Positions 6,001-64,000 of a stretch of DNA of 64,000 nt are shown here, in pieces (the stretch's first letter is position 1; every line of letters starts with the position of its first letter). The translations under genes and the position numbers were made by a program. Below the pieces are notes generated by a model. The model saw nothing but the letters and a program-made list of their open reading frames with translations, made no database searches and had not been told where the DNA came from. Source of the DNA: Mantamonas sphyraenae STR306. Its lineage: Eukaryota; Protista; CRuMs. The stretch is from positions 401,754 through 465,753 of the forward strand of contig JAPMXV010000031.1 of NCBI GenBank assembly GCA_026936335.1, written 5' to 3'.

Positions 6001-6352
6001 GGCACTGTGCGTCGCACCGGGGGCGCCAAAGCCGGACAAGGTGTGGACCCTGGACGACTTTCAGCCATTCAACCCGGATCCCAAGGCACCGCGACTGGAA
6101 CAGAGGATGTTGGCGATGAAGGAGCATCGTCTGCGTCTTGGCATGCAGTACCGGGCATACATCCTTGGCAGTTTCACCATCGAAAGATATCTGCGAGAGC
6201 ACGAGCAGTTGATTTCGCTGGGAGCGCTGCGTGCGCGCGAGCGAGAGGAGCAGCTGGCAGACAAGAAGAAGCAGACGGGCGGTGGGATTGTCGGGAAGCT
6301 CAAGTCGTTGGCGTCGCTTGGATCTTCCCCGTCTCAAGCGAGCTACCAATGA
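1..6352 (+). CDS. Giant polytopic membrane glycosyltransferase family 4 (Gtb3/PelF-like; DUF3492 + Glycos_transf_1 at C-terminus), 5' end outside window
   Basis: Frame open from position 2 to TGA at 6350-6352. Many hydrophobic TM segments in the first ~460 aa. C-terminal PelF-like motifs IWDHGVLWRER, LKDVKNAIKAA, NSSKSEGLPLALGEAGLAGLPVVATDVGGSRE (GT-B EX7E). The motif DSGTWPADGGGVASCRRD resembles the fungal Gtb3-type large GT4 proteins (from memory). Confidence 0.8.
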   Translation, partial: YTALFALLQLCIAALYNSHRGSIWVSIEGQVIIASMVAATALVLSLIFLVGMDPVSVHLIALAFTVLVLFFTFLYVVHYHSVQYADIKTTSDQEVNDWYAALHDVRMPPTHKDPAELDRLLSEWYADDILRVPDEERPDLLQSAIFLNRAKKYAVKMTRQARNEFVRAVHEARYIKAKDFVRRDALVQARAAKYYTEESLVHWYTLLTGKVRPDPASAEWDQLLDEGMGAMNVKQKTDLPHRGGLLWDMVRTYWVHGACYFALMFVDRLLRLAGGLSSSEFFVPTSPYELGVGWAQVYLLLAIGALEPILFRRAASVNNMFKPRMSETFTADVLIKSRSRQAKRIFWTEFKLMWKFVILALFASVGMMFFLSDSVTLDVLWVFGVSVLGYTGFIVGGFNSLFLAQDHGKASRGMMKGLLVGSLIGGGAMVAGFLLQIDASALTGLDLPKTTYRDFAVFGLLAGGIAYGAFTWPTPAKNKASREFDFASQAPMLSTGMATSGQRWLQGLSHGVQINEDHMTLLARQLYKRKDIRKVQGGETGKLVMRTLGQARGIMENMDETSLLRQAFPDAAKHLDILLRSWKADQIRVYLVPEQFLTLPSGQHFSALSYAPELDTLDENAHVDNLELAGSVEEKKGSRRVRLGYDSDESDDEDYSQPVRSRQTRLKSTFRRNTVSNSRRASSTTDVKLVVFVGVQEERPPEEFADQIVEAMVHEYYEMIMGYPHSFAVAAELLVKIDPTGSVVPERILRELHATSDNGLHAVDQSADMEVMVKSLLGFDINEIDARWERIPKAQKRVIVSLLELVDPHFQAPPVTHMQLMAHTGLDTRRFNRAFRALIPHDDLWRRVSAKQRPHSVFLAMGQLNARLALAVKKAAREILTARNVRHNAVHMEIPFTSLVKAEYNPLQSKRNDESQFSEFEDAMPFGEKVLMVLDTFCRLSALALSADVTFGYEKDYAMRASVGNGGLPQPFKFLLNTLVTWTFNVNRVFVNMMVWLPLRLFRPDVQLLFSQVKTGLNRINFKARGRNGLDRVHRMNPEAPLTTFVEYSQETGLVERTTTYSGLLKTRPSDEFKGRVAYCVYKGGRIHQRFECKDKKVRTSAWYYYDGSHLQSGKKSRRVAANVPTMKEVYEKHVATEEEKQLRQPVEEFYYDDRGRVAQGLVMREVDLATLDIGGLDDMVFSIQAYQADGEEGGDETHGAGGSEGKVKLNVEVDFEYPVDAHVADSSANRAMYRCVLPHGDSGQGVGEGAGELELVVQWHDYSRYVDKTEVKVDRMPRVYTDFDYVHLHHPQLRSYIIDEDVGEQRNEDPTLVTEDPLMIVRKPPPSSFYDEDLVAVVPNQAWSFSLIDAITFRGQGASTVYTKRYPTRKARMTVWDAWAAGNLDGVYAQLLDEEILRAEPKLKKYWKYRDHGDLRRAKRAILKQEGSLTPVISFRTNSHLAFRVPDLLMCGAGGTAHSQGRSEKTNLTTAFDQTVGLNFSEENPLLTWALDSGTWPADGGGVASCRRDVINRLPRLRWICNAEIGNTMKIVQNSYQVEQNVASLTFVPLWGSEIGGPNQSILSNVPYGKLSARIWRTTDEIIVKFFLPLMEELVIGSVNQNPRSEQIDGYMSLFTNFYLFFQRYDWATVWGNSIVHQAWRRLWLRIETERYTAFQRELAKRRGSVSGKPIQTVSGENESDVPHMRMFAGELASLDDIDFVMNLYVHFLLPFTVPLPDTNVTHATHHGIQAVLGVVAKQIRQSSFLIWDHGVLWRERLAALDNVSYSLFVRNALVDLTRMCVIVNLRAADMVISCAKTNNPQWEQRMGGRGLNQLTTDVKRRQSPVINGMETNRFSPNRDLELDTPTSVMLSHVYDLKDVKNAIKAANVIVNQFGVKSYQLIVYGSLNKDLGYVQDCRDMIADNGLSNNVKLAGFGNASQVLPQGWLFLNSSKSEGLPLALGEAGLAGLPVVATDVGGSREVVRDQERDITFGAIAPAQNPLALAKAQVKVFCMLEELEALCVAPGAPKPDKVWTLDDFQPFNPDPKAPRLEQRMLAMKEHRLRLGMQYRAYILGSFTIERYLREHEQLISLGALRAREREEQLADKKKQTGGGIVGKLKSLASLGSSPSQASYQ

Positions 6353-6444
6353 GGAGGAGAGAGAGGAGAATGAAAGGAAGGTGCTGTACCACATGTGCAA
6401 GGGAGCAGTGTGCGGCGTTTTGGCCAACCGATTGGAAAACCTGC

Positions 6445-9400
6445 ATGAGCGCAAACGCAGAGAGCGCAGAAGCAGGGGAGGTGAAGGCAGTGCAAGATGA
6501 GGAGGTGGAGGAGGTTGCAGTGGTGGAGGAAGCGGAGGATGAGGTGGTGGAAGGGCGGGAGTACAGCGAGGAGATTGCTGCAATGATTGCGGCGGCGCGG
6601 GAACGGCAGGCGCCGGTGATCCACCTGCAGTCGGAGGAGCTGAGGGGTCTGCCGGAGGAGCTGTTCTCACTTCTGTTCCTGGAGGTGCTGATTCTGGGCA
6701 ACAACGAACTGGAGGAGCTAAGTGGGAAAATTGCATCCTTGAGCAACCTGACGCGTGTGGACTTGTTCCAAAACAAACTGACGACGCTTCCGTTTGAGTT
6801 TGGGAGGTTGGAGGCGCTGCAGGAGCTGTACTTGGATGGGAACCCACTGGGTCAGGTGCCAAACTGCATCTACAACCTGAGGAACTTGCAGCTTCTTTCT
6901 CTGACGAAGTGCGGGCTGACTCGGATCGCGCCGCAGGTGTCGAATCTGTACCAGTTGGCAATGCTGAATGTGTCGGACAACGAACTGACGACGCTGCCCG
7001 CACAGATTGCGTTTATCCACCATCTGGAGGAGCTGAACGCAGAAGACAATGCACTTTCGTCGCTGCCGCGCAGTTTCAGCCGGATGCGTAGCCTGGTGAC
7101 ACTGCGACTGGGTGGCAACCAGCTGGACCGGTTCCCCGACTGTGTGTCGCACGTGGCGTCGCTCAAGACGCTGGATCTGGACAGGAACCAGCTCGCTGTG
7201 CTGCCAGGCGGGTTGCCGCCAGCGCTGGAGACGCTCACGCTGGCGCGCAACCGCTTGGTGTCCATCGAGGCATCGATCAAAAACGCAGGCAACACATTGC
7301 AACACCTGGACGTGTCTGAAAACGACCTCGTGGACGAAGAGCTGCGCAGCTTGGGTGACGTCCTGTCGCTGGTGTCGCTGAACTTGACGGGGAATGCCAA
7401 GGTACGGCGTTTGCCAGCCCGCTTTGCGGCGCTGAAGAAGCTCAAGACGCTGGAACTGGGTGGCATGGAGCAACTGGAACTGCCGTCGCGCGAGGTTGTG
7501 GCGATGGGTCTGGGCGAGATCATGGAACAGCTGAAACAGGGGAGCTCGGGTGAGTCGCGTAGACGTGGGGTCGGGGAGGAGCGGTTCGGGCCCAGCGCGG
7601 CACACAAACTGACACAGAGAGGGGACACGCACACACACACATACACGCATGCACATCTGTGCACAGACGAGGATATGCTCGTGATGGCCAAGGCGGAACA
7701 GGCAAAGGTGGTGCAGCTTTCGGGAGAGGGTTTGGAGACGCTGCCGGCGGCGGTGTTTGAGATTGGGTCTGTGGAAGAGCTGAACGTGTCACGCAACCAC
7801 TTGAAGGGAGTGGAAAAGGAAGTGAGCCAGCTGGGTCGTCTGCGAGACTTGGATGTGTCGTTCAACGAACTGCAGGAGGTGCCGGTGAGCCTGCTTGCCG
7901 TGAGCACACTGCAGCGACTGGACCTGGATCACAACCAAATCGAAAGTGTCAGCTTGCAGTCTATGGGCGACTTGACAAAGCTGTCGTGGTTGTCACTGGC
8001 CAACAACCAGATCGAGGCGCTGTCGACGGGTGCCGAGCAGCTGCGTGCGCTGACATACCTGAACCTGAGCAGCAATGCATTGCAAAAGCTTCCGCATGAC
8101 CTGGGAGCCATGCGTTCGCTGGTTGAGCTGCATGTGGCACGCAACCGGCTGGACAAGCTGCCACAGAGCATTGGAAGGTTGAACAAGCTGAAAGTGCTGA
8201 ACGTGGCACAAAACGCGCTTACCCGGCTGCCCCGTTCGATGGTGTCGATGCAAACCATGCGTGCGCTGAATCTGTCGGACAACCAGCTGCCGAGCCTGCC
8301 TGACGCAGTGCTGCGGCTGACAGGTTTGCGCACCCTGCACGCCGAAAACAACCACTTTGTTCGCATCGAATCACTGAACAGCCTGACGACGTTGCGTGAG
8401 CTGAACCTGAGTGCAAACAAGCTGGAGAACGTACCTGCCATGGAGGAGTGCAAGGGCCTGCAAAAGCTGACGTTGGACGGGAACCAGCTGCGGTGGTTGC
8501 CGTCGTATGTGGGCACGCTGGACGAGCTGCAGGTGCTGATGGTAAACGACAACATGTTGGAGCACATTCCGTCGAGTGTGGCACAGCTGCCGTACCTGAC
8601 TGTGCTGGGTGTGGCAGGGAACCGGCTGGCATCGCTTCCGGCGAGGTGTGTGAGATGAAGACTCTGATGCTGTTGCGGCTGCAGGGCAATCCGGTGGAGG
8701 AGGAACTCCGTGCCTACGAGGCAGAAAAGGAGCGTGTCAAGCGTGAAGGCGGCTTGCTAGGATCAATGATGGAGGGGGTGCCCATGCCGGGATACCTGCA
8801 AGGTGAGTCACACCGCGCCGCGGTGGCCAAGGCCCTGGGAGGCACGGCCACGCAGACGCTGTCGTTGAGTGGAGTGGGCATGTCGCGGCTGCCGATCGAG
8901 CAGGGAGTGTTGGAAAGGCGACAGTGGCGGGAGGTGCTGCAGCGGTTGGATCTGTCGCACAATTGCTTGGACGACCTTCCATCCGAACTGCAGTCTCTGG
9001 TCAATCTGCGTGAGTTGGATGTGTCGCACAACCAGTTGCAGCAGGTGCCAGCGGTGGTGGATTCGTTGCACGCGTTGCAGCGCCTGGATATGGGCCACAA
9101 TCACCTGCGAGAATGGCCTGCACGAGATGTGTTTTTCACGACGCTGGGCAGCCATCTGATGGTGCTGGACATGCGACACAACCACTTGCAGAGTGTGCCT
9201 GTGGAGGTGGAGCAACTGAGCGCCCTGGAGGAGCTGAACGTGAGCGAAAACCAGCTGCGTTCGCTGCCAGCCGAAGTGGGCCAGATGGCACGCGTGAAAA
9301 AGGTGGATTTGAGCAACAACCAGATCCACACTCTGCCTGCTCAGTTGTGTGACATGGAATCGCTGGAGGAGCTGCGCGTGTCGCACAACGAGCTGCAAGT

Positions 9401-12400
9401 GCTGCCGATGTCCACGGGCGACCTGGCCAACCTGCGCGTGTTTGGCTGTTCGCACAACAAGCTGCGGCGCTTCCCACCCGCGGTGTGTGGCGCCGAGGCT
9501 TTGGTGGAGTTGGATCTGAGCCACAACGAGATGGAGGGAGCAACAGACGCCGGGATTTGGCGTCTGACTGCGTTGGAGGAGTTGAACATCAGCCACAACG
9601 CGCTGAGTGCAGTAAGCGACGAAGTGGGCAATCTGGCCAGCTTGAAGACGGTGCGTATGTCCTACAATTTGTTGCGAGAGCTGCCGGCGTCGATGGGTCT
9701 GCTCCGAACCTGCATCGTGTAGAGGTGGGACACAACCGGCTGCAAGAAATCCCGGCCGAGTTTTCGTACATGGACACGCTGCGTGTGTTGGATGTGCAGT
9801 TCAACACAGATCTGTCGTCGCTGCCGCTGTTTCTGTTTGAGCTGCAGTTGGAGGAGCTGGACTTTCGCGGGTGCACGAGCGTGCGTGCGCCTGCGGTGGT
9901 GTTTGAGCATCTGGACAGCATCTGGGCGTCAGAAAACCAGCTCAAGGTCTGTATGACTCTGTTGACATCGGGCGAGGACGGCGGCGCTGCGGCGGCAGCA
10001 CTGCTGGGATCTGGGTCGGGTGGATCGCTGGGATTGGCTGGTCTGAGCGAGAGCGGCAGCGGAAGCGAAAGCAGCACGAGTCTGTCGCTGGCAAACAAGC
10101 GGTTGCAGCTTGTGGACCGACAGGTGTTTAACCGCAAGGGGCTGACACAGCTGGATTTGAGCAACAACCTGCTGGAAGATTTCCCGGTGGGTGTGGCCAA
10201 GCTGACGGCGTTGAAGACTCTGGATCTGTACAACAACCTGCTGAGTGAGGTGCCGCACGACATGTACCGCTACACGATGTTGGAAGACCTGCGTCTGTCG
10301 CAGAACAAGTTTGACCGTGTGCCGGCTGAGCTGGCATTGATGTCGACGTTGCACCGTTTGGACATGAGCCGCAACCGGCTCGAGCCGCAACCTTTGGAGC
10401 GCATGATGTCCAAGATGCTTGTGCTGCATACGCTGCGGCTTCAACGGTGCAACCTGGGCAGCGAGACGCTGGACAGCGACGAACTGGCGGAGATTCTGGA
10501 CTCGATGCCAGCGCTGGTATGCGTGGATGTGAGCCAGAACTACGTGGGTCACGTGCCGCACGCTCTGCGCAAGCTGAAGCGCTTGCAGCATGTGCACCTG
10601 AACGGGTGTCGCATCCGTGAGGTGGGCGTACGTGACGTCAAGGAGTGGACAAAGCTGCAGAGCCTCCACCTGGCCGAGAACGAGCTGAAGGAAATCCCAC
10701 AGGTGCTGGGCAGCATGGCCTCTCTGTGTACGCTGGTTCTGTCAAGGAACCAAATCCGCAAGGTGGACGAAACGATGCCGTTGCTGCACGTGCACACGCT
10801 GACGGATCTGGACCTGTCACACAACATGGTGGATGAGTTGACGCCTTTGGTGGGCGAGATGCACTGGTTGCGCGTGCTGAATGTGTCGCACAACGCGCTG
10901 GAGGTGTTCCCGTGGCAGGTGTGCAGCGTTCGCGACATGCGTGCCCTGAATGTGTCTCACAATCGACTGCGTGTGCTGCCACAGGAGGTGAGCAATATGC
11001 ACATGCTCCAGCATCTGGATGTGTCCCACAACCAGCTGCGTGCACTGCCGCAGTCGCTGGGCAGCATGATCCAGTTGCGCGAATTTCTGTACGAGCACAA
11101 CGCGGCGCGGCTGCTGCCCCGAGCCATCGAGGGCAAGGGGGTGGCAAAGGAGCTGCGGTTCCTGCGTGGGCGTGTAGATGGCATCCAATTGGAGCAGTAC
11201 GACCAGATTTATGATGTGGTGTCTGGCGAGAGCCACCGGCTGGATCTGGGCGGATTGAGCCTGAATCGGCTGCCGGGAGAAATCCTGCGCATGCGCTCAC
11301 GTCTGCATCGCTCAACTTGGGCAACAACCACCTGCAGGAGCTGGATGAGGCAATTGTGGAGCAGTGTGGACAGCTGCGAGAGGTGTCGCTGCGAGACAAC
11401 CACCTGCGGCACATGCCGGCAGTGTTGGGCCAGCTGGCAGATACGCTGGTGGACTTGGACGTGAGCAAGAACGTGTTGGAAAACGACGAGACGTTTGTGG
11501 AAACACTGCAGGTGTTGGGGCAGCTGGAGCGGCTTGTGTTGAGTGAGAACGAGCTGCGGTCTGTGGATGCCAGTGTGCTGGAGGGCAAAACACATCTGTC
11601 CACTCTGGAGCTGGAGGGATGTGGGCTGCGCATGCTACCTGGCACGCTGTGTCTGTGCAGCTCCTTGTCTACGCTTTGTCTGGCCCGCAACTCCCTGTTG
11701 GACCTGCCGTCGGATCTGCCCCAGCTTGCGCCTGCGCTGACGCATCTGGACATCAGTGTGAACCAGTTTTCACGCTTCCCAGCCAATGTGTGCGAGCTCA
11801 CGCGGTTGCGCACGCTCAAGTTTGCGTACAACGGATGCCTGATGCTCCCGCTGAACCTGGGGGCGCTGGAACACGTGGAGGTGTTGGGACTGTCGCACAA
11901 CCGATTCCACACAATTCCCGATTCGTTGAGCGCATGCCAGAAGCTGCGCGAGCTGGATTTGCGCGAAAACAAGCTGGCCCGCGTGTCCAAAACGCTGCTG
12001 GCGTGCACGAGTCTGGAAAAGCTGCTGCTGGATGGAAATGCCATGCGCAGCTTGTTCCAGGAAGCCAAGGAGGAGGAAGAGGGTGCGGCACAGGAGCAAC
12101 CTGTGTCGTCGACTTCGATTCGCGTGTGGACGCGTCTGCAGGTGCTATCGCTGGAAGCAATGGGATTGCAGGATGTGCCGGCGGGTCTCTGCGAGTTGAA
12201 TTGTCTGCACACACTGAGTATGGCCAACAATGCGCTTGTGGAGCTGCCGTCCGAGATGGGCAACATGGCTGCTCTTCAGCGGTTGAATGTGGCAAACAAC
12301 GAGCTGGAAGAGTTGCCCGAGTCGCTGAGCAAGGTGGAAACGCTGCAGCAGCTGGTGGCATTCAACAACCGGCTGCGCACAGTGCCAGACATGCGTGCGA

Positions 12401-53616: not shown

Positions 53617-55581
53617 TCAACCCGCTCCGTCTTCGGTTGGCTCGGCAGCATCGTCTGCATCTCCACTGGGCCCAGCCGCCTCGCCTTGCACGGCCTCGCC
53701 CTCTGCTTCTGCGGCGACGTCCTCGTCGTCGACCGCCACCTCCTCGACATCGTCGCCATCGTCCTGCTGGGGCACGTCGTCGTCGCTGTCGTAATCGACA
53801 ATGACGAGGTAGTCGACGTGGACAAACGAACGGTCCTCAACCTCTGCGGCGTACTGGCTGAGCTCAATGGCAAAGGCCTCGTCGCAGAGCTCAAAGGGCA
53901 GACTGCCAGACTTGTCCTCGACCATGGGGTCGGCCTTGTGCCAGAGGAGGGACTGGACAATCTCTGCGTTCTGGTTTTCGCAGGCAAGGTGAAGCGGGGT
54001 GCGCTTCTTGCTCTTGTCCTGGGAGTTGATGAGTCCCTTGGTCTTCTTGGAATGCAGGTTCTTCTTGGTGCCGGTGCGTGCGATCTCAAAGCGGTTGAGC
54101 TCAAGGATGACCTCGACGGCCTCGGCGGAGTTGTTGTCCACGGCGACGTGCAGGGCAGTGAGACCCGCCTGGTTCTTGGCGTAGCTGGGGCAATCCATGT
54201 TGAGCAACTCGGCGACGAGATTGTAGGAGTTTGCAGCGGCGGCAAAGTGGAGAGCGGTGTTGCCACTGGAATCCTTCTTGGAGATTGCGGAAACGTTGAG
54301 GGATTCTGGCTGGCGGAGCATGAGGAGGGCGATGTCTTCGAGAGAGTTTTGGCAAGCGTAGTGGAGCGCAGTGGTGCCAATGTTCTCGACCTCGACGCAG
54401 AAGGAGATCTGGGCGAGGAGAAGAGTCTCTGCGACCTCGAGGCGTCCTTCGAGGAGCGCCTCGGAGAGCATGTAGGCGAGCTCGGTGGAGAGGTTCTCGA
54501 GGAGCGGGCCCGGGGTGCCGTCGTGCGACGAGGCTTTTTGCATCTCGGTGGAGAGAAGCTTGAGGAGGTTGTCGTCGTGCATCTTGTAGGCCAGGTTGAT
54601 TGGGTAGTCGCCGCTGGTGTTCTTTGTAAACAGCGAGGTGGGGTCTGCGCTGCAAATCACATTGGCGATGGTGAGAGACTCTTGCTTAGCAGCCTCACCG
54701 CTGAAGGACGTGGGCAGCGGGGGTGGAGCGGAGGAGCGTGTGTGAGCGGTGAGGAGGAGGTTGGTGGCGCGCACTGTGTACCTGCATACCTTTGAATGGC
54801 CAGAAGCACGGCATGGAGGGGCGTGTTTCCGTCGCCGTTGAGGATGTTGCAGTCTGCACCATGTGCAATGAGACCGTGGACAGTCCTGGAGAGGGGGGTG
54901 GACGCAGCAGGGTGTGTCAGGGATTTTCCCCTCTTGGGCCTTGCAAAAAAAAATGCCCTCCCGATGAAGCGGGGAGAGGCGGGGGCGCACAGAGGGGGGA
55001 GGGGGTGGGGAAGAGAAAGGAGGCACTCACTTGATCTGGCCACGGACGCAAGCAAGGTGCAGGGCGGTGTTCTTGGTTCCGTCAAAGGCGTCGATGTCGT
55101 AGTCCTCTTTGCAGTCGTTGAGAAAGGCGACGGCGACGTCCTGCTTGTCACGGGGCAGGGCGCAGAAGGTCTGGAGGGCATTGCGCTCAAACTGGGTGTC
55201 CTTGATGTTGATGTCTGCAGAGAGGGCGAGGAGGAGCGAGGCACAGCTGGGCTCTGTGCACAAGTGGAGGGGCGAGCGGCCATTGTCGTCGACCTCGTTG
55301 ATGTCCACAGAGACGTCCTTGAGCAGGCGGCGGAGCTCTTCAAAGTCACTCTCGACACACAGCTGGTGGATGGACTTTTTCTCCTTCTTGCCCTTCTTGT
55401 CGGACTTGTTGCGGCCAAAGAGAGACCCAAGGCCTTTCTTCTTCTTGCTGCTGGAGCCCTCGTCCTTTTCCTTGTCCTTTCCCTTGTCCTTTTTCTTTCC
55501 CAAGCGGAAGCTCCTGAGGGAGGGTGGTGTCAGCGGTGAGGGTGGAGGATGGGAAGGGGGGGGATGGGAGAGGACGCACAT
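53617..55581 (-). CDS. Ankyrin-repeat protein with Lys-rich N-terminus and acidic tail; introns 55514-55579 (splits ATG), 54886-55030, 54701-54789
   Basis: Repeated GxT(P/A)LHxA ankyrin motifs (GRSPLHLC, NTALHLAC, GNTPLHA, GTTALHYAC, GNTALHFA, RTPLHLAC). Canonical GT-AG introns restore the frame. Confidence 0.8.
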
Positions 55582-55739
55582 GTTGACGGGGGATTCGTTG
55601 GGTTGGGCCGGGGGGGAAGGCGGGAATGGGATGTGGGGAGGGTGGGGAGGGTGGGGAGGGTGGATGGAGGAAGGATGGAGGAAGTATGGGTTCGGTTGTG
55701 GGATATGGGCGGGCGGTGGGCCAAAGGAAAAAACCGGAA

Positions 55740-57798
55740 ATGGTGCGCCGTCGAAAGAGCAGCAAGGGAAAGGGAAAGCCAGTGCACTTTTCGCCAGAGG
55801 AACCAGAGGTGGTGGAGGTGGAGCCACATGGAGCGCTGCAGGTACCGTCGCTGCATGTTTCGTCGCTACCGGTGGACTCGCCGTCGCAGCCGAGTCGCCG
55901 TCGCAGGCAGACAAGCCGCGTTCGGAGGTGCGGCGGGAGATTCCGGCAAGCAACGGGTCGCTTTTTCTCATACCAGAGGTGGACGAGATGCTGGTGGACG
56001 ACATCAAGGAAGGAATTGACCAAGAGGCACGGAGTGACAAGCGCACGTCGGTGTGGAGCTTTGTGGTGTTTCTGTTCAAGGTTCTGTGGAATCCGTTGCT
56101 GATTCTGCTGCCGTTCCTGTTCAAGCTGCTCTCGTCGTTTCTGCACATTCCTGCGCTGCAGTTTGTGTTTTCGCTGTTTGACCCACACTACAACGCGCGC
56201 AAACTGTTTGACGAGCGCGTAAAGGCAGCGTCGACCTACGAGGAATGGAAGCAGGGCGCTCTGGCGCTGGACCGGTCGCTGGGCCTCGAGACGTGGAAGT
56301 CGGATCCAGAGAGCACTGAGTATGACTGGGAGAGGCTGCAAGCAAGGCTGGACGAGCTGCGGTCTCTTGCGCAGTCGGGGAACGTCGAGGAAATTACGTT
56401 TTATCTCCGCTCGTGTAGGTCAAGGGTTGGAGACGGGGTGTGGGGTGAAGGAGGGAGGCTGAAGGTGCTGACACACACACTCGCATGCACATACACACAG
56501 TCCTGCTGAGGAATATCAACGGTATCGGAAACCCGAGGCTGTACAACGTGGCGACGCTGGGGACGAAACACATCATCGACGACTACGTGATGGAAGTGGT
56601 GGACCAGCTGAATCTGATCGTGCAGGACAGCTCAGAGAGCGGTCTTGTGACGGACTGGACGGCGCAGGAAAAGTTTGACTTTTTCTACGAGACACGGCAG
56701 GCATACGGGCGCAGCGCAGTGTTGTTTTCGGGCGGGGCAACGCTGGGCCTGTACCATCTGGGAGTGGCGAAAGCGCTGTTTGAGGCGGATCTTCTGCCGC
56801 GTGTGATGTCTGGATCGTCTGTGGGGTCGCTCATCTGCGCCATTGTGGGAGTACGCACGGACGAGGAGCTGCCCGGGATCTTCCGTCCAGGCTCGCTGAA
56901 GCTGGACACGTTTGACAGCAACGATACGGGGGCAATCCACCGCAAGGTGCGGCGGCTGCTGACACGTGGCGTGCTGATGGATGTGCGGAAGCTGCAAAAG
57001 GCGGTGCGCGAGAACATTGGAGACATCACGTTTCTGGAGGCGTACAACCGCACGGGCCGCATGATCTCGATCACGGTGAACAACTCGGACAAGGGGGAGT
57101 TTCCAAGGCTGCTAAACTACTTGACGGCACCGCACGTGCTGGTGTGGAGCGCGGCGTGTGCATCGTGCGCGCTTCCGGGGTTGTTTGAAAGCGTGGAGCT
57201 GATGGCAAAGGACAGGCACGGGAAAGTGGTACCGTGGATGGCAAGCTGTCTGCGATGGTCCGACGGCTCGGTGAACAACGACCTGCCGATGGCGAGGCTC
57301 AGCGAACTGTTCAACGTCAACTTTTTCATTGTGTCGCAGGTGAACCCGCACGTGGCGCCCATGCTCAAGTTTAGCATCGAGCACCAGCGAGACCCGTCGC
57401 TGTTTTCGCGGGTTCTGCACTTTGTGAAGACGGAGAGTGCGCACAGGGCGCGGCAGATGGCGGAGTTGCGCATTTTGCCGTCGTTCTTGCAGCACATCGA
57501 ACCTGTGTTTTCGCAGAAGTATGAGGGAGACATTACGATTGTGCCGGATCTGCAGCTGGAGGACTACAAGCTGATTGTGACGAATCCGACGGATGAAAAG
57601 GTGCAGCGGTGCATCGCCGGCGGACAGCGGTCGACCTGGCCGCAGCTGCACTACATCCGCAACCTCACGCTGATTGAGCGTACATTGGAGGCATGCGTGC
57701 AGTGTATGCGAGCCAAGATGAAAAAGTCTGGCGGGATGATCCGCAGCCGATCGGATAGGAATCTGCGACTGCTGGAGGATTTCAGCGCCGGTGGGTAA
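55740..57798 (+). CDS. Patatin-like triacylglycerol lipase (SDP1/Tgl3-5 family, DUF3336 + patatin); intron 56415-56500; probable -1 frameshift at ~55891 (alternative start 55988)
   Basis: YEEW..ALALD...WK, YGRSAVLFSGGATLG, SGSSVGS (GXSXG), TFLEAYNRTGR, LLNYLTAPHVLVWSA, WSDGS, LSELFNVNFFIVSQVNPH. Confidence 0.9.
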
Positions 57799-57812: not shown

Positions 57813-59810
57813 CTATTCGAGGCGTTGTCGTTTGAAAGATGGATTGTGTGGCGCAAAGTGCACTTTCCGCTTGTTGTTTGTGTGGAGGTGGGAAAGGTCG
57901 AGGTTGGCCACGTCTTCCAGAGTGCGCGGGCGCACGTGTGGACATGCACGCAACCTGCGCACGATTCTTGGGAGAAGAGCGTACGTGGGGGTGGTCAGGC
58001 CACTGAGGTTCAGTGCCCAGGCGATGCGGAGCGAGAGGTAGGTTGTTCCAAACACGAGAGAGGACTTGATGGCGTTGGCGATGTCGAGGATGGACACATC
58101 ATCCTGTGGGCGCAACAGACGTGCAAAGTAAAAGAGTTCGACTGGCGGGATGCCTCGTGAGTTCAGGGCAATGGAAATATGGACAAAGAGGTCGGTGAGC
58201 TCGCTACTGTGAATCAGATGGTCGGCAAACACCGCTTCACCTCGGCTGAGCACGGCGTACTTGACGGAAAGGGAGCGCATGTACGCGTACAAGGCAGCAA
58301 ACTCCCTATCTGTGCACGAACTGCGCGAACCGGGTTGCCAGCCAGGCGCCATGGGACGTGGGTGCCAATCGCTCAGGGGGGAGAGATCGTGGTCGTACTC
58401 CAACGCGCGAAGCACAGGGCCCACGGACTGTTGATGAGCAAGTTGACGCCAATCTGTGGGGCGCGGCAGGTTGCGGGACGCCAGGACGTCCAAAACGATG
58501 TGCAGGAGGGCATACGTGGGTTCTTCGTCGCTCGACGAGATGCCGTCTGCCTTGCATGTGCGTAGCATGTGCGAATTCAGAGCCGACGAGACGTTGTGGA
58601 GCATGCGCGCGGAGTGAAGCGTCGAGGCGAGCGTGTTTGCGTCCAGATTGTGGCCCAGCAGGTGGGCAAAGAACGCGATATCACCTTGTGGGATTGCATA
58701 TCCTTCCAGATCAGCACAGAGATGTCCAATGAGGGCGGCTGTGTTGTTGTGGTATACAAGAACGCGTATGGCGAGGAGCTCCTCAGTGGAGATAGAGGAC
58801 GACGGGTGGTCTTTGGCGATGCGGTGCATGGTGGAGAGGAGGGCGTTGAACTCGTCATCATTGGCAAAGACACGGATGGAGGGGGTGACTTTGCGGGCGG
58901 GAGGGAGGGCGGAGTGGGGCGCCGAGACGGTTTTCTTGAGCGGAGACGTCTCTGGCTCGGATTCAGAGAGCTCTTGCGAGTCAGGGATGACTTGGATGTC
59001 CATGGAGTCTGTGGTAGGGGTCACGTCTGTTGTGGAGCCGCTGGTGGTGGTGGCCGGGAGAGGGCTGGGTAGAATTTGATCATGTTGCTCTGGAGAGACA
59101 GGCGGGTCCACGTGGCTATGAGAGGCAATTTCCGGGGTAGTTTCGGTCTCGAGTGGGCTCTGCGAGGGCAAGGGTGAGGAGGTGAGGCCGGTGGAGCTCT
59201 GGAGCGTTCTGGCGCCAAAACTTGGGTCGTCCGTGTCCGAGCCACTGCTGCTGGCCACGGAATCTGAAATGACGGAGGCATCGTCTTGATGGAGGTTTTC
59301 GGTGGTGAGAGATTCCTCGTGTGTGTCGGCGGATGATGAGGATGTGTGGACAAGGCGCTGCGGGGGCGCGGGGACCGGTTGGGCAAATTCTTGGAGGTCG
59401 CTGTCAGACCGTGCGCGTGCTGAGTCGGTGTTTGGGTGAATCTGAGGGAACTGCTGGTAGGCGTAGGGAAATATGGACGTGTTTTGATGGTAGTAGGGGC
59501 TGTAGACTGGTTGTTGGAACTGTTGTGGAGCGGGTTGCGAGTTGGGTGCGTAGTAGAACGGGGTTGATCCGGTCTGTAAGGCTGCTGTATGCGTCCCAGT
59601 GTTCATGTGGGCTGTGTATTGTTGTGGGACGTAGTACATGTACTGTGGAGTGTTGGAATAGTGACCGGGTTGGGCAAAGTAGTATTGGGGCTGGCCTATG
59701 CCGGAAGCTTTCCAGGCCCCTTGGTTTGTGTATGTGTTGGTGTTGAGGTTTGTGCTTGTGTTTGGATGTGTATTGAAGTTGGAGTTGGGGTTGGGGTTGG
59801 TGCCCTCCAT
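57813..59810 (-). CDS. Orphan subtelomeric protein A (665 aa): Q/Y/P/N-rich N-terminus, S/T/D-rich linker, one A+B pair of an unrecognised helical domain, C-terminal KRKVHF...KRQRLE
   Basis: Uninterrupted ORF with clear amino-acid similarity to the neighbouring 59932-63522 gene (QGD.AF...LLG, YALLH, YDH.L...WHP.P...GW, SCT.REF, G.PPV.L..F.RLLRP, SL.I.W). Confidence 0.75.
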   Translation of the reverse strand: MEGTNPNPNSNFNTHPNTSTNLNTNTYTNQGAWKASGIGQPQYYFAQPGHYSNTPQYMYYVPQQYTAHMNTGTHTAALQTGSTPFYYAPNSQPAPQQFQQPVYSPYYHQNTSIFPYAYQQFPQIHPNTDSARARSDSDLQEFAQPVPAPPQRLVHTSSSSADTHEESLTTENLHQDDASVISDSVASSSGSDTDDPSFGARTLQSSTGLTSSPLPSQSPLETETTPEIASHSHVDPPVSPEQHDQILPSPLPATTTSGSTTDVTPTTDSMDIQVIPDSQELSESEPETSPLKKTVSAPHSALPPARKVTPSIRVFANDDEFNALLSTMHRIAKDHPSSSISTEELLAIRVLVYHNNTAALIGHLCADLEGYAIPQGDIAFFAHLLGHNLDANTLASTLHSARMLHNVSSALNSHMLRTCKADGISSSDEEPTYALLHIVLDVLASRNLPRPTDWRQLAHQQSVGPVLRALEYDHDLSPLSDWHPRPMAPGWQPGSRSSCTDREFAALYAYMRSLSVKYAVLSRGEAVFADHLIHSSELTDLFVHISIALNSRGIPPVELFYFARLLRPQDDVSILDIANAIKSSLVFGTTYLSLRIAWALNLSGLTTPTYALLPRIVRRLRACPHVRPRTLEDVANLDLSHLHTNNKRKVHFAPHNPSFKRQRLE

Positions 59811-59931
59811 TGTTTGGAGGGTGGGTTTGTTTTGGTGCGGGAGCGTGGTGTGATTGTTCCAACGTCATGTGTCAGAGGTGTCAGAGGAGAGATTTTCCGG
59901 TGCTTGGAAGTGGAAAGTGGCATGAATGGGT

Positions 59932-62900
59932 TCATTCCAGGCGTTGGCGTTTGGAGGAGGAGGAGGAGGAGGAGGAGGAGGAGGAGGAGGAGGAGGAGGA
60001 GGAGGAGGAAGGATCTTTGCGCTTGGGGAGGGTGAAAGAGGGGATGGTGTAGGCGTTGACGAGAGCGGGAGTGGTGGGACGGGTGGTGATGTGGGGTGTG
60101 ATGCGGTCGATGAGGGTGTGGAGGAGAGTGTGCAGTGTGGCGTCGCTGGGTTGGGGGTTGTCGAGCCAGGCGATCTTGAGGGAGAGGGGGGTGACGCCGC
60201 GAGTGAGGGTAGTGCTGATGGCACCTTGCACATGTTTGTAGGTGAGTCGTGGCCTGAGGAGACGGACAAAGAAGGCCAGGTCGACAGGCGGCACGCCAAC
60301 GTTGCCCAGCGCCAGGATGACGTGTCGCACCAGGGATTTCAGGTCGCCGTTGTTGATCAGCTCACGCAGTGCCTGGTTCTCTTGTGCGTGCTGATGGCGA
60401 GGGTGCTTGGCTGCGCGTGCCTTCATGCGTGCCAGCAGCGTCTGGAACTCCCGCGCCGTGCAGCTGCCTCGCTCGTCTCCGGTCTTGCTCCAGCCACTGC
60501 GCACAGACTCAGGATGCCACTTGTCCACCTCTTTGGTGGTGAGGTGGTTGTCGTAGTCGCATTGTGTCCAGTGTGGGTCGCTGTCGTTGTCAGCAGGGCG
60601 TCGTGCTTTCTGCAGCCTCAGCTGGGTCTGCTCGTGCTCCTTCCAGGTGGTGGGATGGGGTCTGTCGCCGAGAGTGTCCATCTCTGTCATGAGGAGGTGG
60701 AGGAGGGCGTAGTTGGGGTCGCCGTGGTCGTGTGGCTCCTCCAGCCAGCACACCTTCAATCCAGCCTTGGTCACACCAATGGCCAGACCAGCGTGTCGGA
60801 TGGCAAGGCTGCACACATGTTGATCCATATCACGGCCGAGGAGGGTGAGGCAGAAGGCCATGTCGCCCTGGGAGAGGGGGATGTTGCCCAGAGAGAGCTG
60901 AACCTGTCGGACCAGCGCGGTCGTGGTGCCATGGCAGACCGCAACACGCGCCTGCAGGGTCATGAGGACGGAGATGTCGTCGATGGGATACTCGTTCGCC
61001 AGGGTGTGCATGTGGTTCAGCAGTGCCGTGTGCTCCTTCTTGTTGCTGTGGCTGCGCTCGCTCTTGCCCCACTTTGTCCAGCCACTGCGCACAACGCCAT
61101 CTGGCAGTTCATCCTCCACGGCCATCATCTCCTCCTCAGTGGGCTCGGGAAGATCAAGCTCGGTGATGGCAAGGGCATTGACGGCGTCGACTGTGGTAGG
61201 GCGGGTGTTGATGTGGGGTGTGATGCGGTCGATGAGGGTGTGCAGGAGGGTGTGCAGTGTGGCGTCGCTGGGTTGGGGGTTGTCGAGCCAGACGATCTTG
61301 AGGGAGAGGGAGGTGACACCGCGGGTGAGATTGTCGCTGATGGCAGGGGATAATTGCTGGTAGGTGAGACGTGGCCTGAGGAGGCGGACAAAGAAGGCCA
61401 AGTCGACAGGCGGCACGCCAACGTTGCCCAGCGCCAGGATGATGTGTCGCACCAGGGACATCTTGCTTCCGTTGTTGATCAGCACACGCAGTGTCTGGTG
61501 CTCGTGTGCGTGCTGATGGCGGGGGTGCTTGGCTGCGCGTGCCTTCATGTGTGCCAGCAGCGTCTGGAACTCCCGTGCCGTGCAGCTGCCACGCTCGTCG
61601 CTGGGAGTGGCACTGCTCCAGCCACTGCGCACAGGCTCAGGATGCCACTCTTCCACATTGGTTGTGGTGAGGTGGTGGTCGTAGTCGCAATGTGTCCAGT
61701 GTGGGTCGCTGTCGTTGTCAGCAGGGCGTCGTGCTTCCTGCAGCCACAGCTGGGTCTGCTCGTGCTCCTTCCAGGTGGTGGGAGGGGGCCTGTTGCCGAG
61801 AGTGTCCATCTCTGTCATGAGCAGGTGGAGGAGGGCGTAGTTGGGGTCACCGCGGTCGTCTGGCTCCTCCAGCCAGCACACCTTCAACACAGCCTTTGTC
61901 ACACCCATGGCCAGACAAGCGTGTCGGATGGCAAGGCTGCACACATGTTGATCCATATCACGGCCGAGGAGGGTGAGACAGAAGGCCATGTCGCCCTGGG
62001 ATATGGGTGTGTTGCCCAGAGCGAGCTGAATCTGTCGGACAAGCGTGTTCAGGGTGCCATGGCAGACCACAACACGCGCCTGCAGGGTCATGAGGACGGA
62101 GATGTCGTCGATAGGATGCTCGTTGGCCAGGGTGTGCATGTGGTTCAGCAGTGCCGTGTGCTCCTTCTTGTTGCTGCGGCTGCGCTCGTCACTGATTCCT
62201 GCTGTCCACCCTTTGCGCACAACACCATCTGGCAACTTGTTCGTCTCGTTCACGCCTGATTTCTTCCGCTCGCTGGTGTCTCCGTTCTTTGCACTCCTTG
62301 CCCGTGTGCTCGACGTTCCTGTCTCTGTGCCACTGCCAGGCGTGACCCTGAGCCTGCGCTGTCCACTGCCTTTCATCTTCTGTGGACCAGTACTGGTGAG
62401 GCCTCTGCGTCGTCGTGTGCGGAATTTTCTTGTGCGCCCCGAATGCCATTCGTCCGTGCCCTTCTGTTCCATGTCGTCTGCGTCGTCGTCGCTGTCATCT
62501 TGCGGCATGTACTCCTCATCCATGGCATCACCAGTGTCCGAGAAGCTAAGTGTGCCCTGAGTTTCCGACTCGTCATCCGCGTGCTGCTGGGTTGCGTCGT
62601 TTGCCTCGCCGTCTTCTTCGTACGCCTCCATCCCTGAGCTGGTCATCCACTCTGAGTTGCTGGAGATTGAACGTGGTTCACGGTGGCCAAAGTTCAGGAA
62701 CATCAGGTCCTCCACGTCGCCGGTGTCATGTGTGTGTGTGTCCTGGTCTTCGTCGTCGTCGTCGCTGTCTCCAGTCTGCCGTGTGGCCTGGTGGTAGGAG
62801 GACGACGTTGTGGTGGCGGATGTGGCCCGTGTGATGCCGACAAAGGCTGGGCTGGTGCGTTTGGGGACGCGGTTGTGGTTTGTGGTAGGTTGAGCAGGCG

Positions 62901-63522
62901 GAGGGTGCGACGGAGGCTGAGCGAAGTGCACCTGGGCGGTTTGTCGCGGCTGAGGAGGCGGCGGAGGAGGGTAGGCGTAGTATGGGTGGCCCTGATGAGC
63001 ATATGCGTGGTGCTGCTGGGGGTGGGTGTTGACAGGGACCCAGATGATGGGTGGTTGTGGGTGCTGGTACGGGTTTTGTACGCCAGATCCGGGCAGCATG
63101 ATCGAGAACGGCTGAGCAGCCATGGGAGGGACCATGTACGCGTAGCTGAGAAGGGGAGGGGCAGGGCGGGGTGGGGACGGTGAGCGGAAGGCGGAGTGGA
63201 CGCCGTCAGGGCAGAAGCGGGATGAAGGGAGGCAGGGGCGAGCAAAGAGGGAAAAACGGAGGAGATTGGCAGACCGGGAAACCGGCAACGGGGAGGGCAG
63301 TAGCAGGGGAGAGGGGATCGGAGAAGGGCAGAGAAGGAAGCAGCGGTGGTGATCGGGAAGTGGAGATGCAGGGAAGGCGTGGAGGGAAGCGACGGAGGCA
63401 TGGAGGAGGCATTGAAGCGGGAGGAGCGGGCAGTCAGAAAACGGAGTGGAAGGCAGAACGCACGCTGGGTAGGTGTTGGATGTGTATTGTTGCTTCGGAG
63501 TGTTTGGATAGTCGTTGTCCAT
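59932..63522 (-). CDS. Orphan subtelomeric protein B (~1,090 aa): P/Q/Y/H-rich N-terminus, acidic and basic linker, two A+B domain pairs, poly-Ser, KRQRLE; probable in-frame intron 63146-63463
   Basis: Long ORF. Probable start MDNDYPN at 63522. A pyrimidine-rich GTGCGT...CTCAC...CTCAG segment of 318 nt behaves as an intron. Internal duplication is conserved in frame. Confidence 0.75.
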   Translation of the reverse strand: MDNDYPNTPKQQYTSNTYPACVLPSTPFSDCPLLPLQCLLHASVASLHAFPASPLPDHHRCFLLCPSPIPSPLLLPSPLPVSRSANLLRFSLFARPCLPSSRFCPDGVHSAFRSPSPPRPAPPLLSYAYMVPPMAAQPFSIMLPGSGVQNPYQHPQPPIIWVPVNTHPQQHHAYAHQGHPYYAYPPPPPPQPRQTAQVHFAQPPSHPPPAQPTTNHNRVPKRTSPAFVGITRATSATTTSSSYHQATRQTGDSDDDDEDQDTHTHDTGDVEDLMFLNFGHREPRSISSNSEWMTSSGMEAYEEDGEANDATQQHADDESETQGTLSFSDTGDAMDEEYMPQDDSDDDADDMEQKGTDEWHSGRTRKFRTRRRRGLTSTGPQKMKGSGQRRLRVTPGSGTETGTSSTRARSAKNGDTSERKKSGVNETNKLPDGVVRKGWTAGISDERSRSNKKEHTALLNHMHTLANEHPIDDISVLMTLQARVVVCHGTLNTLVRQIQLALGNTPISQGDMAFCLTLLGRDMDQHVCSLAIRHACLAMGVTKAVLKVCWLEEPDDRGDPNYALLHLLMTEMDTLGNRPPPTTWKEHEQTQLWLQEARRPADNDSDPHWTHCDYDHHLTTTNVEEWHPEPVRSGWSSATPSDERGSCTAREFQTLLAHMKARAAKHPRHQHAHEHQTLRVLINNGSKMSLVRHIILALGNVGVPPVDLAFFVRLLRPRLTYQQLSPAISDNLTRGVTSLSLKIVWLDNPQPSDATLHTLLHTLIDRITPHINTRPTTVDAVNALAITELDLPEPTEEEMMAVEDELPDGVVRSGWTKWGKSERSHSNKKEHTALLNHMHTLANEYPIDDISVLMTLQARVAVCHGTTTALVRQVQLSLGNIPLSQGDMAFCLTLLGRDMDQHVCSLAIRHAGLAIGVTKAGLKVCWLEEPHDHGDPNYALLHLLMTEMDTLGDRPHPTTWKEHEQTQLRLQKARRPADNDSDPHWTQCDYDNHLTTKEVDKWHPESVRSGWSKTGDERGSCTAREFQTLLARMKARAAKHPRHQHAQENQALRELINNGDLKSLVRHVILALGNVGVPPVDLAFFVRLLRPRLTYKHVQGAISTTLTRGVTPLSLKIAWLDNPQPSDATLHTLLHTLIDRITPHITTRPTTPALVNAYTIPSFTLPKRKDPSSSSSSSSSSSSSSSSSSSKRQRLE
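59953..60009 (+). repeat. (GGA)19 trinucleotide tract encoding poly-Ser in gene B
   Basis: Perfect GGA run, read as TCC codons on the minus strand. Confidence 0.95.
60088..62235. repeat. Recent tandem duplication, ~1.12-1.13 kb period, within subtelomeric gene B
   Basis: atgtggggtgtgatgcggtcgatgagggtgtg at 60089 and 61211 (offset 1122). The offset becomes 1128 after an in-frame 6-nt indel. Long identical blocks throughout. Confidence 0.95.
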
Positions 63523-63790
63523 GGTGGTGGTGGTGGTACTGGAGTGTATGTGTAATGTGTTGGACAGGTGGAGGGTGTGGTGGGTGTTGGTGATATTTTG
63601 GTTGAAGGCGGATGGGCAGTGCTGACTGCGCGGCGTTGCCAGACGAAGGACACTCACCAGCGACAATTCCACTCCCACCCATTGCCCACTGCCCCGTGTC
63701 ACCACCCAACTCAGCCACCCCGCCAGCAAACACAAGCTCAACTCACACGACATAGACCAGAACCATAACACCACCACATTTGTGAATAAA

Positions 63791-64000
63791 TCAGGGTTAG
63801 GGTTAGGGTTAGGGTTAGGGTTAGGGTTAGGGTTAGGGTTAGGGTTAGGGTTAGGGTTAGGGTTAGGGTTAGGGTTAGGGTTAGGGTTAGGGTTAGGGTT
63901 AGGGTTAGGGTTAGGGTTAGGGTTAGGGTTAGGGTTAGGGTTAGGGTTAGGGTTAGGGTTAGGGTTAGGGTTAGGGTTAGGGTTAGGGTTAGGGTTAGGG
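63791..64000 (+). repeat. Telomere: one TCAGGG variant followed by (TTAGGG)34 to the window end
   Basis: Perfect TTAGGG array from 63797 to 64000, with the G-rich strand running 5'->3' toward the end. Confidence 0.99.

Follow-up and report, generated by a model that had tools for sequence, protein, structure and literature searches.

A telomere-adjacent repeat unit of Mantamonas sphyraenae and its apparently nuclear, modular orphan protein family

The 64,000-nt stretch of the Mantamonas sphyraenae genome analysed here (the window) runs into telomeric repeats, and its last two genes, inner gene A and outer gene B, raise the question of what kind of gene sits directly at a chromosome end of this organism, how widely it is found at other ends and what its protein might do. 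Mantamonas is a free-living bacterivore belonging to CRuMs, a supergroup of deep-branching eukaryotes. The published M. sphyraenae genome comprises 78 contigs (25.06 Mb); repeats were masked ahead of gene calling, and the family described below is unmentioned there (PMC10492846).

Layout of the chromosome end and its two genes

A first-pass annotation of the window described two tandem genes read away from the telomere, the outer one starting about 270 nt from the TTAGGG array, and both ending in an identical KRQRLE. All three points hold: the genes correspond to minus-strand ORFs (57813-59810 and 59932-63522/63777), the ATG of gene B at 63522 lies 271 nt from the start of the array at 63793, and KRQRLE followed by a stop is present in both ORFs (Table 1). 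The array comprises 34.7 copies of period 6 with 100% matches (Tandem Repeats Finder). In an alignment of 15 chromosome ends, the junction sequence is different at every end, the conserved start TCCGGTCTATGTC being preceded by 25-150 nt of T-rich, mutually unrelated sequence. The adjoining leader, a candidate promoter region, is found in telomere-adjacent copies and is missing from the inner copies of tandem arrays, in which homology starts only at CCATCTGCCTTCAACC; the leader segment shared by both kinds of copies closes, in gene B, with the Kozak-like ACCACCATGG.

Table 1 Features of the window end (positions in the window).
Feature	Position	Strand	Basis or remark
Telomere array (TTAGGG)n	63793..64000, up to window end	+	Tandem Repeats Finder and sequence reading
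Short junction, telomere repeats/conserved unit	63765..63792	−	Alignment of 15 chromosome ends
Terminal-only leader, G-rich on gene sense strand	63616..63764	−	Kept in 15/15 ends
Shared 5' leader, C-rich	63523..63615	−	Common to terminal and inner copies
Gene B (outer gene) exon 1, 59 nt, begins with ATG	63464..63522	−	Comparison of copies
Gene B predicted intron, GTGCGTTC ... polypyrimidine ... CAG	63146..63463	−	Comparison of copies only
Gene B exon 2	59932..63145	−	ORF, composition, family dN/dS
Module A1 (gene B)	61750..62229	−	Near-neutral, pI 6.1
Module B1 (gene B)	61168..61644	−	Basic, pI 10.5
Module A2 (gene B)	60622..61101	−	Module alignment
Module B2 (gene B), used for folding	60046..60522	−	Predicted winged-helix-like core at module residues 57-124
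Gene B tail: PKRKD, poly-Ser, KRQRLE	59935..60045	−	ORF, tandem repeats, dN/dS
Gene A (inner gene), 665 aa	57813..59810	−	ORF
Module A (gene A)	58425-58910	−	pI 6.2
Module B (gene A)	57891-58370	−	pI 9.1

Comparison of copies predicts that gene B consists of a 59-nt exon, an intron and a long second exon. Exon 1 is exactly 59 nt long and begins with ATG in all 29 copies that have the standard leader, the intron donor is invariant among the copies compared, and the acceptor is a CAG behind a pyrimidine tract ((C/A/T)ACAG; TCTCAG in the window copy). Intron length varies from 318 to 330 nt, with a remainder modulo 3 of 0, 1 or 2 in 8, 9 and 4 of 21 copies, respectively. When the exons are joined, solely as a check of the reading frame across copies, 25 of 29 copies can be read through without a premature stop, compared with about 7 unspliced, and 25 of 30 copies are full-length under the splice model. 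The prion-like N-termini claimed by the annotation are borne out only in part: the N-terminus of the spliced, 1090-aa gene B protein is still P/Q/Y/H-rich, but what had been read as residues ~20-125 of the outer gene (63146-63463, ~106 aa) appears to be the conserved intron.

Exon 2 encodes, in order, P/Q/Y/H-rich, acidic and basic regions, modules A1-B1-A2-B2, poly-Ser and KRK...KRQRLE before the stop. The acidic linker that had been annotated is indeed acidic (pI 4.05); the very basic stretch behind it (pI 12) had been missed. By composition, the B modules are strongly basic (pI 10.5-10.9), and the A modules are not (pI ~6.2). The poly-Ser tract of the tail varies in length among copies and reads (GGA)19 on the plus strand. 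As proposed, the protein ends resemble a nuclear localisation signal: the KRK...KRQR tail of both genes, judged as a motif, looks like a bipartite one, and no evident signal-peptide-like N-terminus was seen by eye in the family protein.

The two tandem genes are paralogs (32% identity over ~350 aa, E = 8e-42), the A+B unit of gene A aligns twice on the A+B+A+B of gene B, and the A and B subtypes can be aligned with each other at 25-35% identity, all as initially annotated. The N-terminus of gene A is rich in N/Q/Y/P, its middle is acidic and S/T-rich, and its tail reads KRKV...KRQRLE. It is 32-36% identical to the outer-gene family and lacks a close copy, the closest match elsewhere in the genome being only 34-37% identical; no record was found among the public assemblies searched for contigs encoding the gene A protein. 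Gene A is probably an old relative in which the ancestral two-module layout has been retained.

Exchange between chromosome ends homogenises and reshuffles the repeat units

The repeat unit is 3.85 kb long and carries one gene (59-nt exon, ~320-nt intron, 3.2-kb exon). The family was counted by patterns in the genome rather than from fetched ends: the marker pattern of the outer gene gives ~173 copies (88 on the plus and 85 on the minus strand), compared with 0 matches for the reversed-pattern control. A 33-mer of the terminal leader occurs 124 times (63 plus, 61 minus); of the 100 occurrences listed, all except a few are 150-450 nt from a contig end. With 132 telomeric contig ends reported for this genome (PMC10492846), the leader is accordingly found at ~94% of telomeres, at the same distance. 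Among the 100 marker copies listed, all those on the plus strand are within 11 kb of the contig start and all those on the minus strand are at the high-coordinate contig end (within 10 kb for all contigs of known length), except for an internal cluster (C29), which also accounts for the only two listed copies that do not point inward. The chromosome ends carry 1-3 head-to-tail copies of the unit. The expansion at chromosome ends in fixed orientation that had been guessed from the window is far surpassed by the 173 copies and the 124 places with a terminal leader.

The limits of the unit are sharp. Nucleotide identity among copies is 87-92% from the telomere junction or leader to the stop codon and ~45% (unrelated) beyond it, homology being gone within ~100 nt past the stop and within ~10 nt in the copies that were read. 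At tandem junctions, the stop is followed by a C-rich spacer of 70-190 nt and then by the leader; no run of (TTAGGG)2 or longer was found in any of 30 loci, which take in both of the tandem junctions that were read.

In two pairs of copies located on different contigs (L014/L019 and L008/L027), divergence is 1-2% over one part of the sequence and 6-11% over another. The four-gamete test fails for 33% of site pairs, and incompatibility between neighbouring sites is lower than in all 300 permutations. Hence, exchange among different ends both homogenises the units and shuffles them anew. The non-coding leader and intron are conserved as strongly as the coding part, so that much of the similarity among copies reflects homogenisation rather than constraint.

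Selection on the modules, their predicted fold and the search for relatives

The annotation had proposed dN/dS between copies as a check, with a value near 1 counting against the family; the value obtained, about 0.5 across the family (median 0.51, range 0.38-0.67), indicates protein-coding sequence under selection, and the lowest value within gene B is that of the tail (0.15). Parsimony counts, which ignore recombination, identified 53 codons in which nonsynonymous change exceeds that expected under neutrality, and these codons occupy homologous positions across the four modules. They form three hypervariable patches per module, one of which runs along one face of a helix (i, i+4, i+7/8). With numbering from MVPP, the hypervariable codons are 312, 314, 363, 397, 401, 404 and 405 in A1 and 507-512, 558-559, 593, 597 and 601 in B1; codons 688, 739, 773, 777 and 780 of A2 are exact homologs of A1 ones, and codons 967, 971 and 975 of B2 fall on helix 95-105 of the predicted model described below. 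When sites were chosen in A1 and B1 and scored in A2 and B2, dN was 0.68 and 0.97 vs. a dS of 0.165 (sets of only 5-7 codons each), compared with a dN of 0.062 for the remaining module codons; patch dN exceeds the background dS by a factor of 4-6. The hot columns hold roughly 5 to 12 different residues among 21 copies, with invariant neighbours alongside. These observations are suggestive of a module scaffold under purifying selection and of putative recognition surfaces that diversify faster than neutral.

Module B2 folded alone gave a confident AlphaFold2 model (pLDDT 90.9, pTM 0.87); pLDDT was only 71-75 for the other four models, and the A+B unit folded together (pLDDT 53) was discarded, with no fold search made from it. 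DSSP assigns to the B2 model helices 61-71, 79-89 and 95-105, a bridge at 77 and strands 107-110 and 115-119, matching the winged-helix order H1-S1-H2-H3-S2-wing-S3, with two long helices before this predicted core and one after it. Nearly all of the best 50 matches among 48,161 chains (VIA-align) are winged-helix or related DNA-binding domains, including Fur, MecI/BlaI, MarR, forkhead, histone H5, ORC/MCM WH and SAMD1, with the best rows at an rmsd of 1.6-3.7 Å over 59-88 residues; Z is weak (4.5-5.9), and, according to the tool's warning, Z < 8 can reflect a common arrangement. The best Foldseek rows are of the MarR family, likewise weak (E ≥ 0.5), and the top row of the Atlas structure search is a winged-helix AlkZ-like protein (TM ≤ 0.46). 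The module core is probably winged-helix-like with extra helices, a confident model with weak structural matches; the first-pass description of an unrecognised helical domain does not stand as worded.

By sequence, the family remains an orphan, as the annotation had held. Protein searches were run with exon 2 and the modules, exon 1 (19 codons) being too short to search. Pfam yielded no family for the four modules at E up to 10, no sequence profile (Pfam; PDB sequences) assigned them to a winged-helix family, and the PDB sequence search and the Atlas features gave no match. The annotation had recognised neither a family nor RT, transposase or helicase motifs, and Pfam has no match for either. 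The claim of a lineage-specific family is likewise upheld: no relative was found by words in 5.8 billion clusters, and none was accepted from an HMM search of 1.84 billion representatives, whose sole match (P0001), an EF-hand repeat protein with an hhalign probability of 2%, was rejected as spurious. No copy of the family was found in the protein collections, which may omit records of the M. sphyraenae genome.

Possible roles and comparison with known systems

The window ends in the standard M. sphyraenae chromosome cap, a 3.85-kb terminal unit that lies directly beside the telomere, points inward and is present in 1-3 head-to-tail copies. We favour, tentatively and with somewhat less than even confidence, the reading that this cap unit is a nuclear, transcription-factor-like repertoire gene with diversified winged-helix-like modules that are exchanged between ends. 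The family protein would be nuclear, with a transcription-factor-like architecture of P/Q/Y/H-rich, acidic and basic regions, the A-B-A-B modules and the NLS-like tail. Three small patches per module seem to be driven to differ between copies, one of them lying along one side of the helix that would occupy the recognition-helix position of a winged helix. The ~170 copies would then most likely encode nuclear binding proteins that differ in specificity and together form a repertoire, whose variety subtelomeric recombination may generate. The basic B modules, with their pI of 10.5-10.9 and a hypervariable face on helix 95-105 of the model, would most likely bind nucleic acid. Binding of the TTAGGG repeat itself, suggested earlier, is a poor fit and was judged unlikely, because an invariant target is hard to match with a hypervariable putative recognition face.

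It is unlikely, yet worth weighing, that the unit is a selfish terminal repeat of the Y' type, which persists by recombinational spread and whose protein serves this spread or end maintenance and not the cell. The position right beside the telomere, the tandem arrays of 1-3 copies, their fixed orientation, sharp unit limits, mosaic exchange between ends and a leader and intron as conserved as the ORF all suit such an element, whereas the lack of any helicase, RT, nuclease or recombinase domain in Pfam, of telomere repeats inside the tandem junctions that were read, and of poly(A) and terminal repeats does not, and hypervariable patches on a conserved scaffold would be unexpected in a protein with one fixed job. 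We consider equally improbable an intracellular repertoire that recognises proteins rather than DNA, for example sensing or restraining viruses and the transposons in which this genome abounds, with the modules as protein-binding scaffolds. Winged helices bind proteins and RNA too, and diversifying selection on surface patches and the non-basic A modules are compatible with this reading; however, the NLS-like tail, the acidic and basic regions and the strongly basic B modules suit a nucleic-acid binder better.

A bolder form of the favoured nuclear repertoire, which we regard as more doubtful still, would be a diversity-generating set of ~170 DNA-binding nuclear proteins in which each of the four winged-helix modules can be re-targeted, recombination writing the new specificities, that is, a nuclear counterpart of antigenic variation, used in genome defence or in telling ends apart among ~66 small chromosome pairs. 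Each promoter would touch a telomere, so that only a few copies of such a repertoire might be expressed at once. Least probable of the readings retained, and very unlikely, is that the DNA itself matters as a cis-acting subtelomere (a telomere-adjacent promoter, origin, boundary or pairing/bouquet site) and that the ORF is merely carried along: a leader that recurs at the same distance at ~94% of telomeres and the equal conservation of non-coding and coding parts would be expected, but not a dN/dS of 0.5, the intactness of 25 of 30 long ORFs despite ~11% divergence, the conservation of exon length and splice sites while intron length drifts, or site-specific selection. A telomere-targeted non-LTR retrotransposon of the HeT-A/TART type, which ends 3' in poly(A), is truncated to varying extents at its 5' end and carries an RT or Gag ORF, is rejected, as the unit has no A tract, loses homology within ~10 nt past the stop in the copies read and has no RT/Gag domain in Pfam, sharing with that type only a head-to-tail arrangement and a 5' end directed at the telomere.

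To our knowledge, the subtelomeric gene families known so far encode helicases, surface antigens or metabolic genes. M. sphyraenae caps nearly all of its ~130 telomeres with one orphan, apparently nuclear, modular and focally diversifying gene. If the modules bind DNA, they amount to a naturally occurring library of related binders whose specificity positions have been mapped; failing that, the family is still a very uniform gene-bearing cap and a clean system for studies of end-to-end exchange. The predicted fold has the same order of helix, short strand, helix, helix and beta-hairpin as MarR, Fur, BlaI/MecI, forkhead and histone H5, and differs from known winged-helix domains in the presence of four modules of two charge types in one chain.

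The Y' elements of Saccharomyces cerevisiae are subtelomeric repeats of several kb next to the telomere, arranged as 1-4 tandem copies whose single long ORF encodes a helicase (Y'-Help1); they are spread and homogenised by recombination between ends, are found at only part of the ends and have telomere repeats between tandem copies. The Mantamonas unit is similarly telomere-adjacent and arranged in short tandem arrays, but it encodes a four-module, winged-helix-like orphan without a helicase domain, is found at ~94% of telomeres with no interstitial telomere repeats seen, and has hypervariable patches, of which we know none in Y' elements. Plasmodium var, Trypanosoma VSG and Pneumocystis MSG are telomere-linked repertoires of secreted or surface antigens of parasites. 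The Mantamonas family resembles them in its large repertoire, ectopic recombination and conserved scaffold with hypervariable surface positions, whereas its protein looks nuclear and has, by eye, no evident signal-peptide-like N-terminus.

In Candida albicans, TLO (telomere-associated ORF) genes are the last genes and point to the centromere. They form an expanded subtelomeric family of Med2 subunits of Mediator (PMC5908203, PMC10721199, PMC4335505). They offer a parallel for an expanded subtelomeric family that acts in nuclear transcription and not at the cell surface, with functional differences between paralogs as a TLO feature; TLO comprises 10-15 copies with a Med2 domain, compared with ~173 copies in Mantamonas that have no Med2 or other Pfam domain and carry repeated modules with focal hypervariability.

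Two paralogous genes at a chromosome end

Two minus-strand open reading frames (ORFs) occupy the final 6.2 kb of the window (60% G+C): gene A, the inner gene with two modules, and gene B, the outer gene with four, which adjoins the telomere. The proteins are 32% identical over ~350 residues (E = 8e-42), and the gene A unit matches gene B twice, i.e. A+B vs. A+B+A+B, A and B being the two module subtypes; no Pfam family was detected in either protein. The first-pass annotation, which described tandem paralogs with KRQRLE ends next to a TTAGGG array, this module layout and no recognised domain, is therefore accurate: the ORFs and the repeat array bear out the arrangement, the double alignment the layout, and the Pfam search is blank for both proteins. 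A patatin-like lipase gene ends 14 nt from the gene A stop, so that the subtelomeric zone here spans only ~6.2 kb. The GGA tract encoding poly-Ser varies in length from copy to copy.

Features of the window, the internal cluster and the hypervariable places (codons counted from MVPP; A1-B1-A2-B2, gene B modules in order)
Feature	Position	Strand	Remarks
Patatin-like lipase gene	55109-56509, 56485-57798	+	with intron; convergent with gene A
Gene A	57813-59810	-	ORF, 665 aa, terminal KRQRLE
Gene B ORF	59932-63522	-	terminal KRQRLE
(GGA)19 tract	59953-60009		encodes poly-Ser run preceding KRQRLE
Gene B predicted intron	63146-63463	-	318 nt, stop-free
TTAGGG array, perfect	from 63793		telomere side of gene B
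L031	G000:C29:80001-88000	+	ORF 51-5864; internal cluster
L032	C29:90001-100000	-	ORF 4568-9982; internal cluster
Hypervariable place 1			loop joining GW and ER
Hypervariable place 2			loop preceding first core helix
Hypervariable place 3	A1 397/401/404-405; B1 593/597/601; A2 773/777/780; B2 967/971/975		one helix, positions i, i+4, i+7/8

Nearly all telomeres carry a terminal repeat unit

The published Mantamonas sphyraenae assembly (25.06 Mb, 78 contigs, 59.19% GC; our count, 25,061,354 bases in 78 contigs) carries TTAGGG at both ends of 59 contigs and at one end of 14, that is, at 132 contig ends (PMC10492846). A six-frame genome search with gene B recovered full-length copies on most contigs (82-86% protein identity), those on the plus strand ~1.7 kb from contig starts and those on the minus strand near contig ends. 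A 30-mer of the single-copy linker (up to 3 mismatches allowed) occurs 173 times in the genome (88 +, 85 -; 0 matches for the reversed-pattern control), and several chromosome ends hold two or three copies spaced by 3.3-3.9 kb. A 33-mer of a leader segment limited to telomere-adjacent copies occurs 124 times (63 +, 61 -), corresponding to ~94% of the 132 telomeric ends, and in the 100 places listed it lies, with few exceptions, 150-450 nt from a contig end. Nearly every telomere thus carries the terminal repeat unit, 3.85 kb long with one gene B-type gene, and both markers confirm the suggested enrichment at chromosome ends in fixed orientation, strand being set by the end. No close copy of gene A turned up: apart from itself, the best match in the genome is 34-37% identical. 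The word 'subtelomere' is absent from the genome paper, and because repeats were masked ahead of gene prediction (PMC10492846), this telomere-capping family is probably missing from the published proteome.

Unit limits were taken from an alignment of 30 copies, in which DNA identity is 87-92% from leader to stop codon and then drops to ~45% within ~100 nt; in copies read closely, homology is gone within ~10 nt past the stop. The conserved unit start (TCCGGTCTATGTC) is set off from the telomere repeats by 25-150 nt of end-specific DNA. At tandem array junctions, a C-rich spacer of 70-190 nt separates the stop from the next leader, which lacks its first ~145 nt; no interstitial telomere repeats at these junctions and no poly(A) at unit ends were found in the copies read.

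Several variants were observed. Loci L035 (C5:100-520) and L041 (C25:100-520) share an extra insert of ~120-150 nt between telomere repeats and unit start, absent in the other 13 aligned ends. The sole internal cluster seen is on C29, the longest contig (75-97 kb), where plus-strand copies at 75-86 kb face minus-strand copies at 90-97 kb and one 1937-aa ORF comprises two full proteins fused in frame, with eight modules; L031 and L032, two pieces of this contig, contain no telomere repeats, and the cluster could be a rearrangement relic or an assembly join. In some arrays the innermost copies, as at locus L017 (G000:C22:220500-225824, minus strand) and also 3' of the stop in L020 (C46), retain four modules (85% identity) but differ at the 5' end, with an N-terminus beginning MFRISGSVNRPL...; two or more alternative heads therefore exist in the family. 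At G000:C17:2852-5158 and C35:2860-5208, copies have open frames of 1624-1646 aa and one further partial match. Module number seems variable: two in gene A, usually four, and more in the C17 and C35 copies.

Copies from different contigs are mosaics. Two pairs, L014 at the left end of C12 with L019 at the right end of C20, and L008 (C46) with L027 (C23), differ by only 1-2% in the 3' part of the gene (half or two thirds of it) and by 6-11% in the 5' part, a pattern that points to recent conversion tracts linking different chromosomes. The four-gamete test fails for one third of site pairs, and neighbouring-site incompatibility is below that in all 300 permutations. Together with the mosaics, these results show recombination between chromosome ends.

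Predicted splicing and selection

From the comparison of copies, the gene B family gene is predicted to consist of a 59-nt exon, an intron and a long exon. The reading frame between the ATG and 'MVPPMAAQPF' differs from copy to copy. The standard leader is present in 29 copies; in each of them the ATG has a Kozak-like context and exon 1 measures exactly 59 nt, with an invariant donor (GTGCGTTC). At the acceptor, CAG follows a pyrimidine tract, reading CACAG or AACAG in most copies and TCTCAG in gene B of the window, and intron length, 318-330 nt, is unconstrained to multiples of three. With the splice, 25 of 30 copies have an uninterrupted frame through to the stop, compared to ~7 without it (L017, whose 5' end differs, was left out of this scoring); frameshifts in the acidic or the basic region disrupt 4 of the 30. 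Since the predicted gene B intron in the window lacks a stop, the first-pass annotation read through it: gene B keeps a P/Q/Y/H-rich N-terminus, but part of the N-terminal stretch taken for protein is predicted intron.

For pairs drawn from 21 copies, dN/dS ranges from 0.38 to 0.67 (mean dN 0.09, dS 0.18). Parsimony counts of changes on the tree identified 53 codons with nonsynonymous changes exceeding the neutral expectation, and these occupy the same three places in every module. In a non-circular check, sites picked in A1 and B1 were scored in A2 and B2, yielding dN of 0.68 and 0.97, compared to dN 0.062 and dS 0.165 for the other positions of the modules. Hot columns hold roughly 5 to 12 residue types among the 21 copies, and adjoining positions are invariant. 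The gene is protein-coding and, by prediction, spliced; purifying selection acts on it overall, and focal diversification recurs from module to module.

Predicted fold and candidate functions

Searches for relatives, covering exon 2 and the modules, by words (5.8 billion clusters), PDB sequences and Atlas features found none, and the profile search (1.84 billion representatives) gave a single match, an EF-hand repeat protein, which was rejected (hhalign probability 2%), in keeping with the proposed lineage-specific family. The model of an A+B unit was poor (pLDDT 53). B2 was then modelled alone, from an alignment of 86 rows that pooled both module subtypes from gene A and the gene B copies; the best model reached pLDDT 90.9 and pTM 0.87 (the other four, pLDDT 71-75), with two long helices, a helix, a short strand, two helices, a beta-hairpin and one further helix. 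Foldseek returned no significant match for this model, the best rows being MarR-family regulators; in exhaustive structural alignment against 48,161 chains, the top 50 were almost all winged-helix or related DNA-binding domains, at weak scores (Z 4.5-5.9; best rows, rmsd 1.6-3.7 Å over 59-88 residues, model residues 57-124), and the top Atlas row was a winged-helix AlkZ-like protein (TM 0.46). Topology and the uniformity of the hit list, rather than a strong score, suggest a winged-helix-like core with family-specific additions. The 'unrecognised helical domain' of the first reading remains outside Pfam and has a confident model with such a winged-helix-like core. The hypervariable helix face falls on helix 95-105 of the B2 model, which would take the place of the recognition helix in a winged helix.

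After its P/Q/Y/H-rich start, gene B has an acidic stretch (pI 4.05, 39 D/E in 112 residues) and then a basic one (pI 12); pI is 10.5-10.9 in its B modules, which are basic, and 6.1-6.3 in its near-neutral A modules, a split also found in gene A. The two genes share a tail of KRK, a spacer and terminal KRQRLE that resembles a bipartite nuclear signal.

We suggest that the protein would be nuclear and, with a winged-helix core in its modules, would bind varied targets, most likely nucleic acid via the basic B modules. A hypervariable putative contact face is a poor match for binding to the telomere repeat, which is invariant. Possible too, and ranked below this nucleic-acid-binding reading, are a protein-recognition repertoire, a cis-acting DNA role of the unit, and a purely selfish repeat comparable to Y'.
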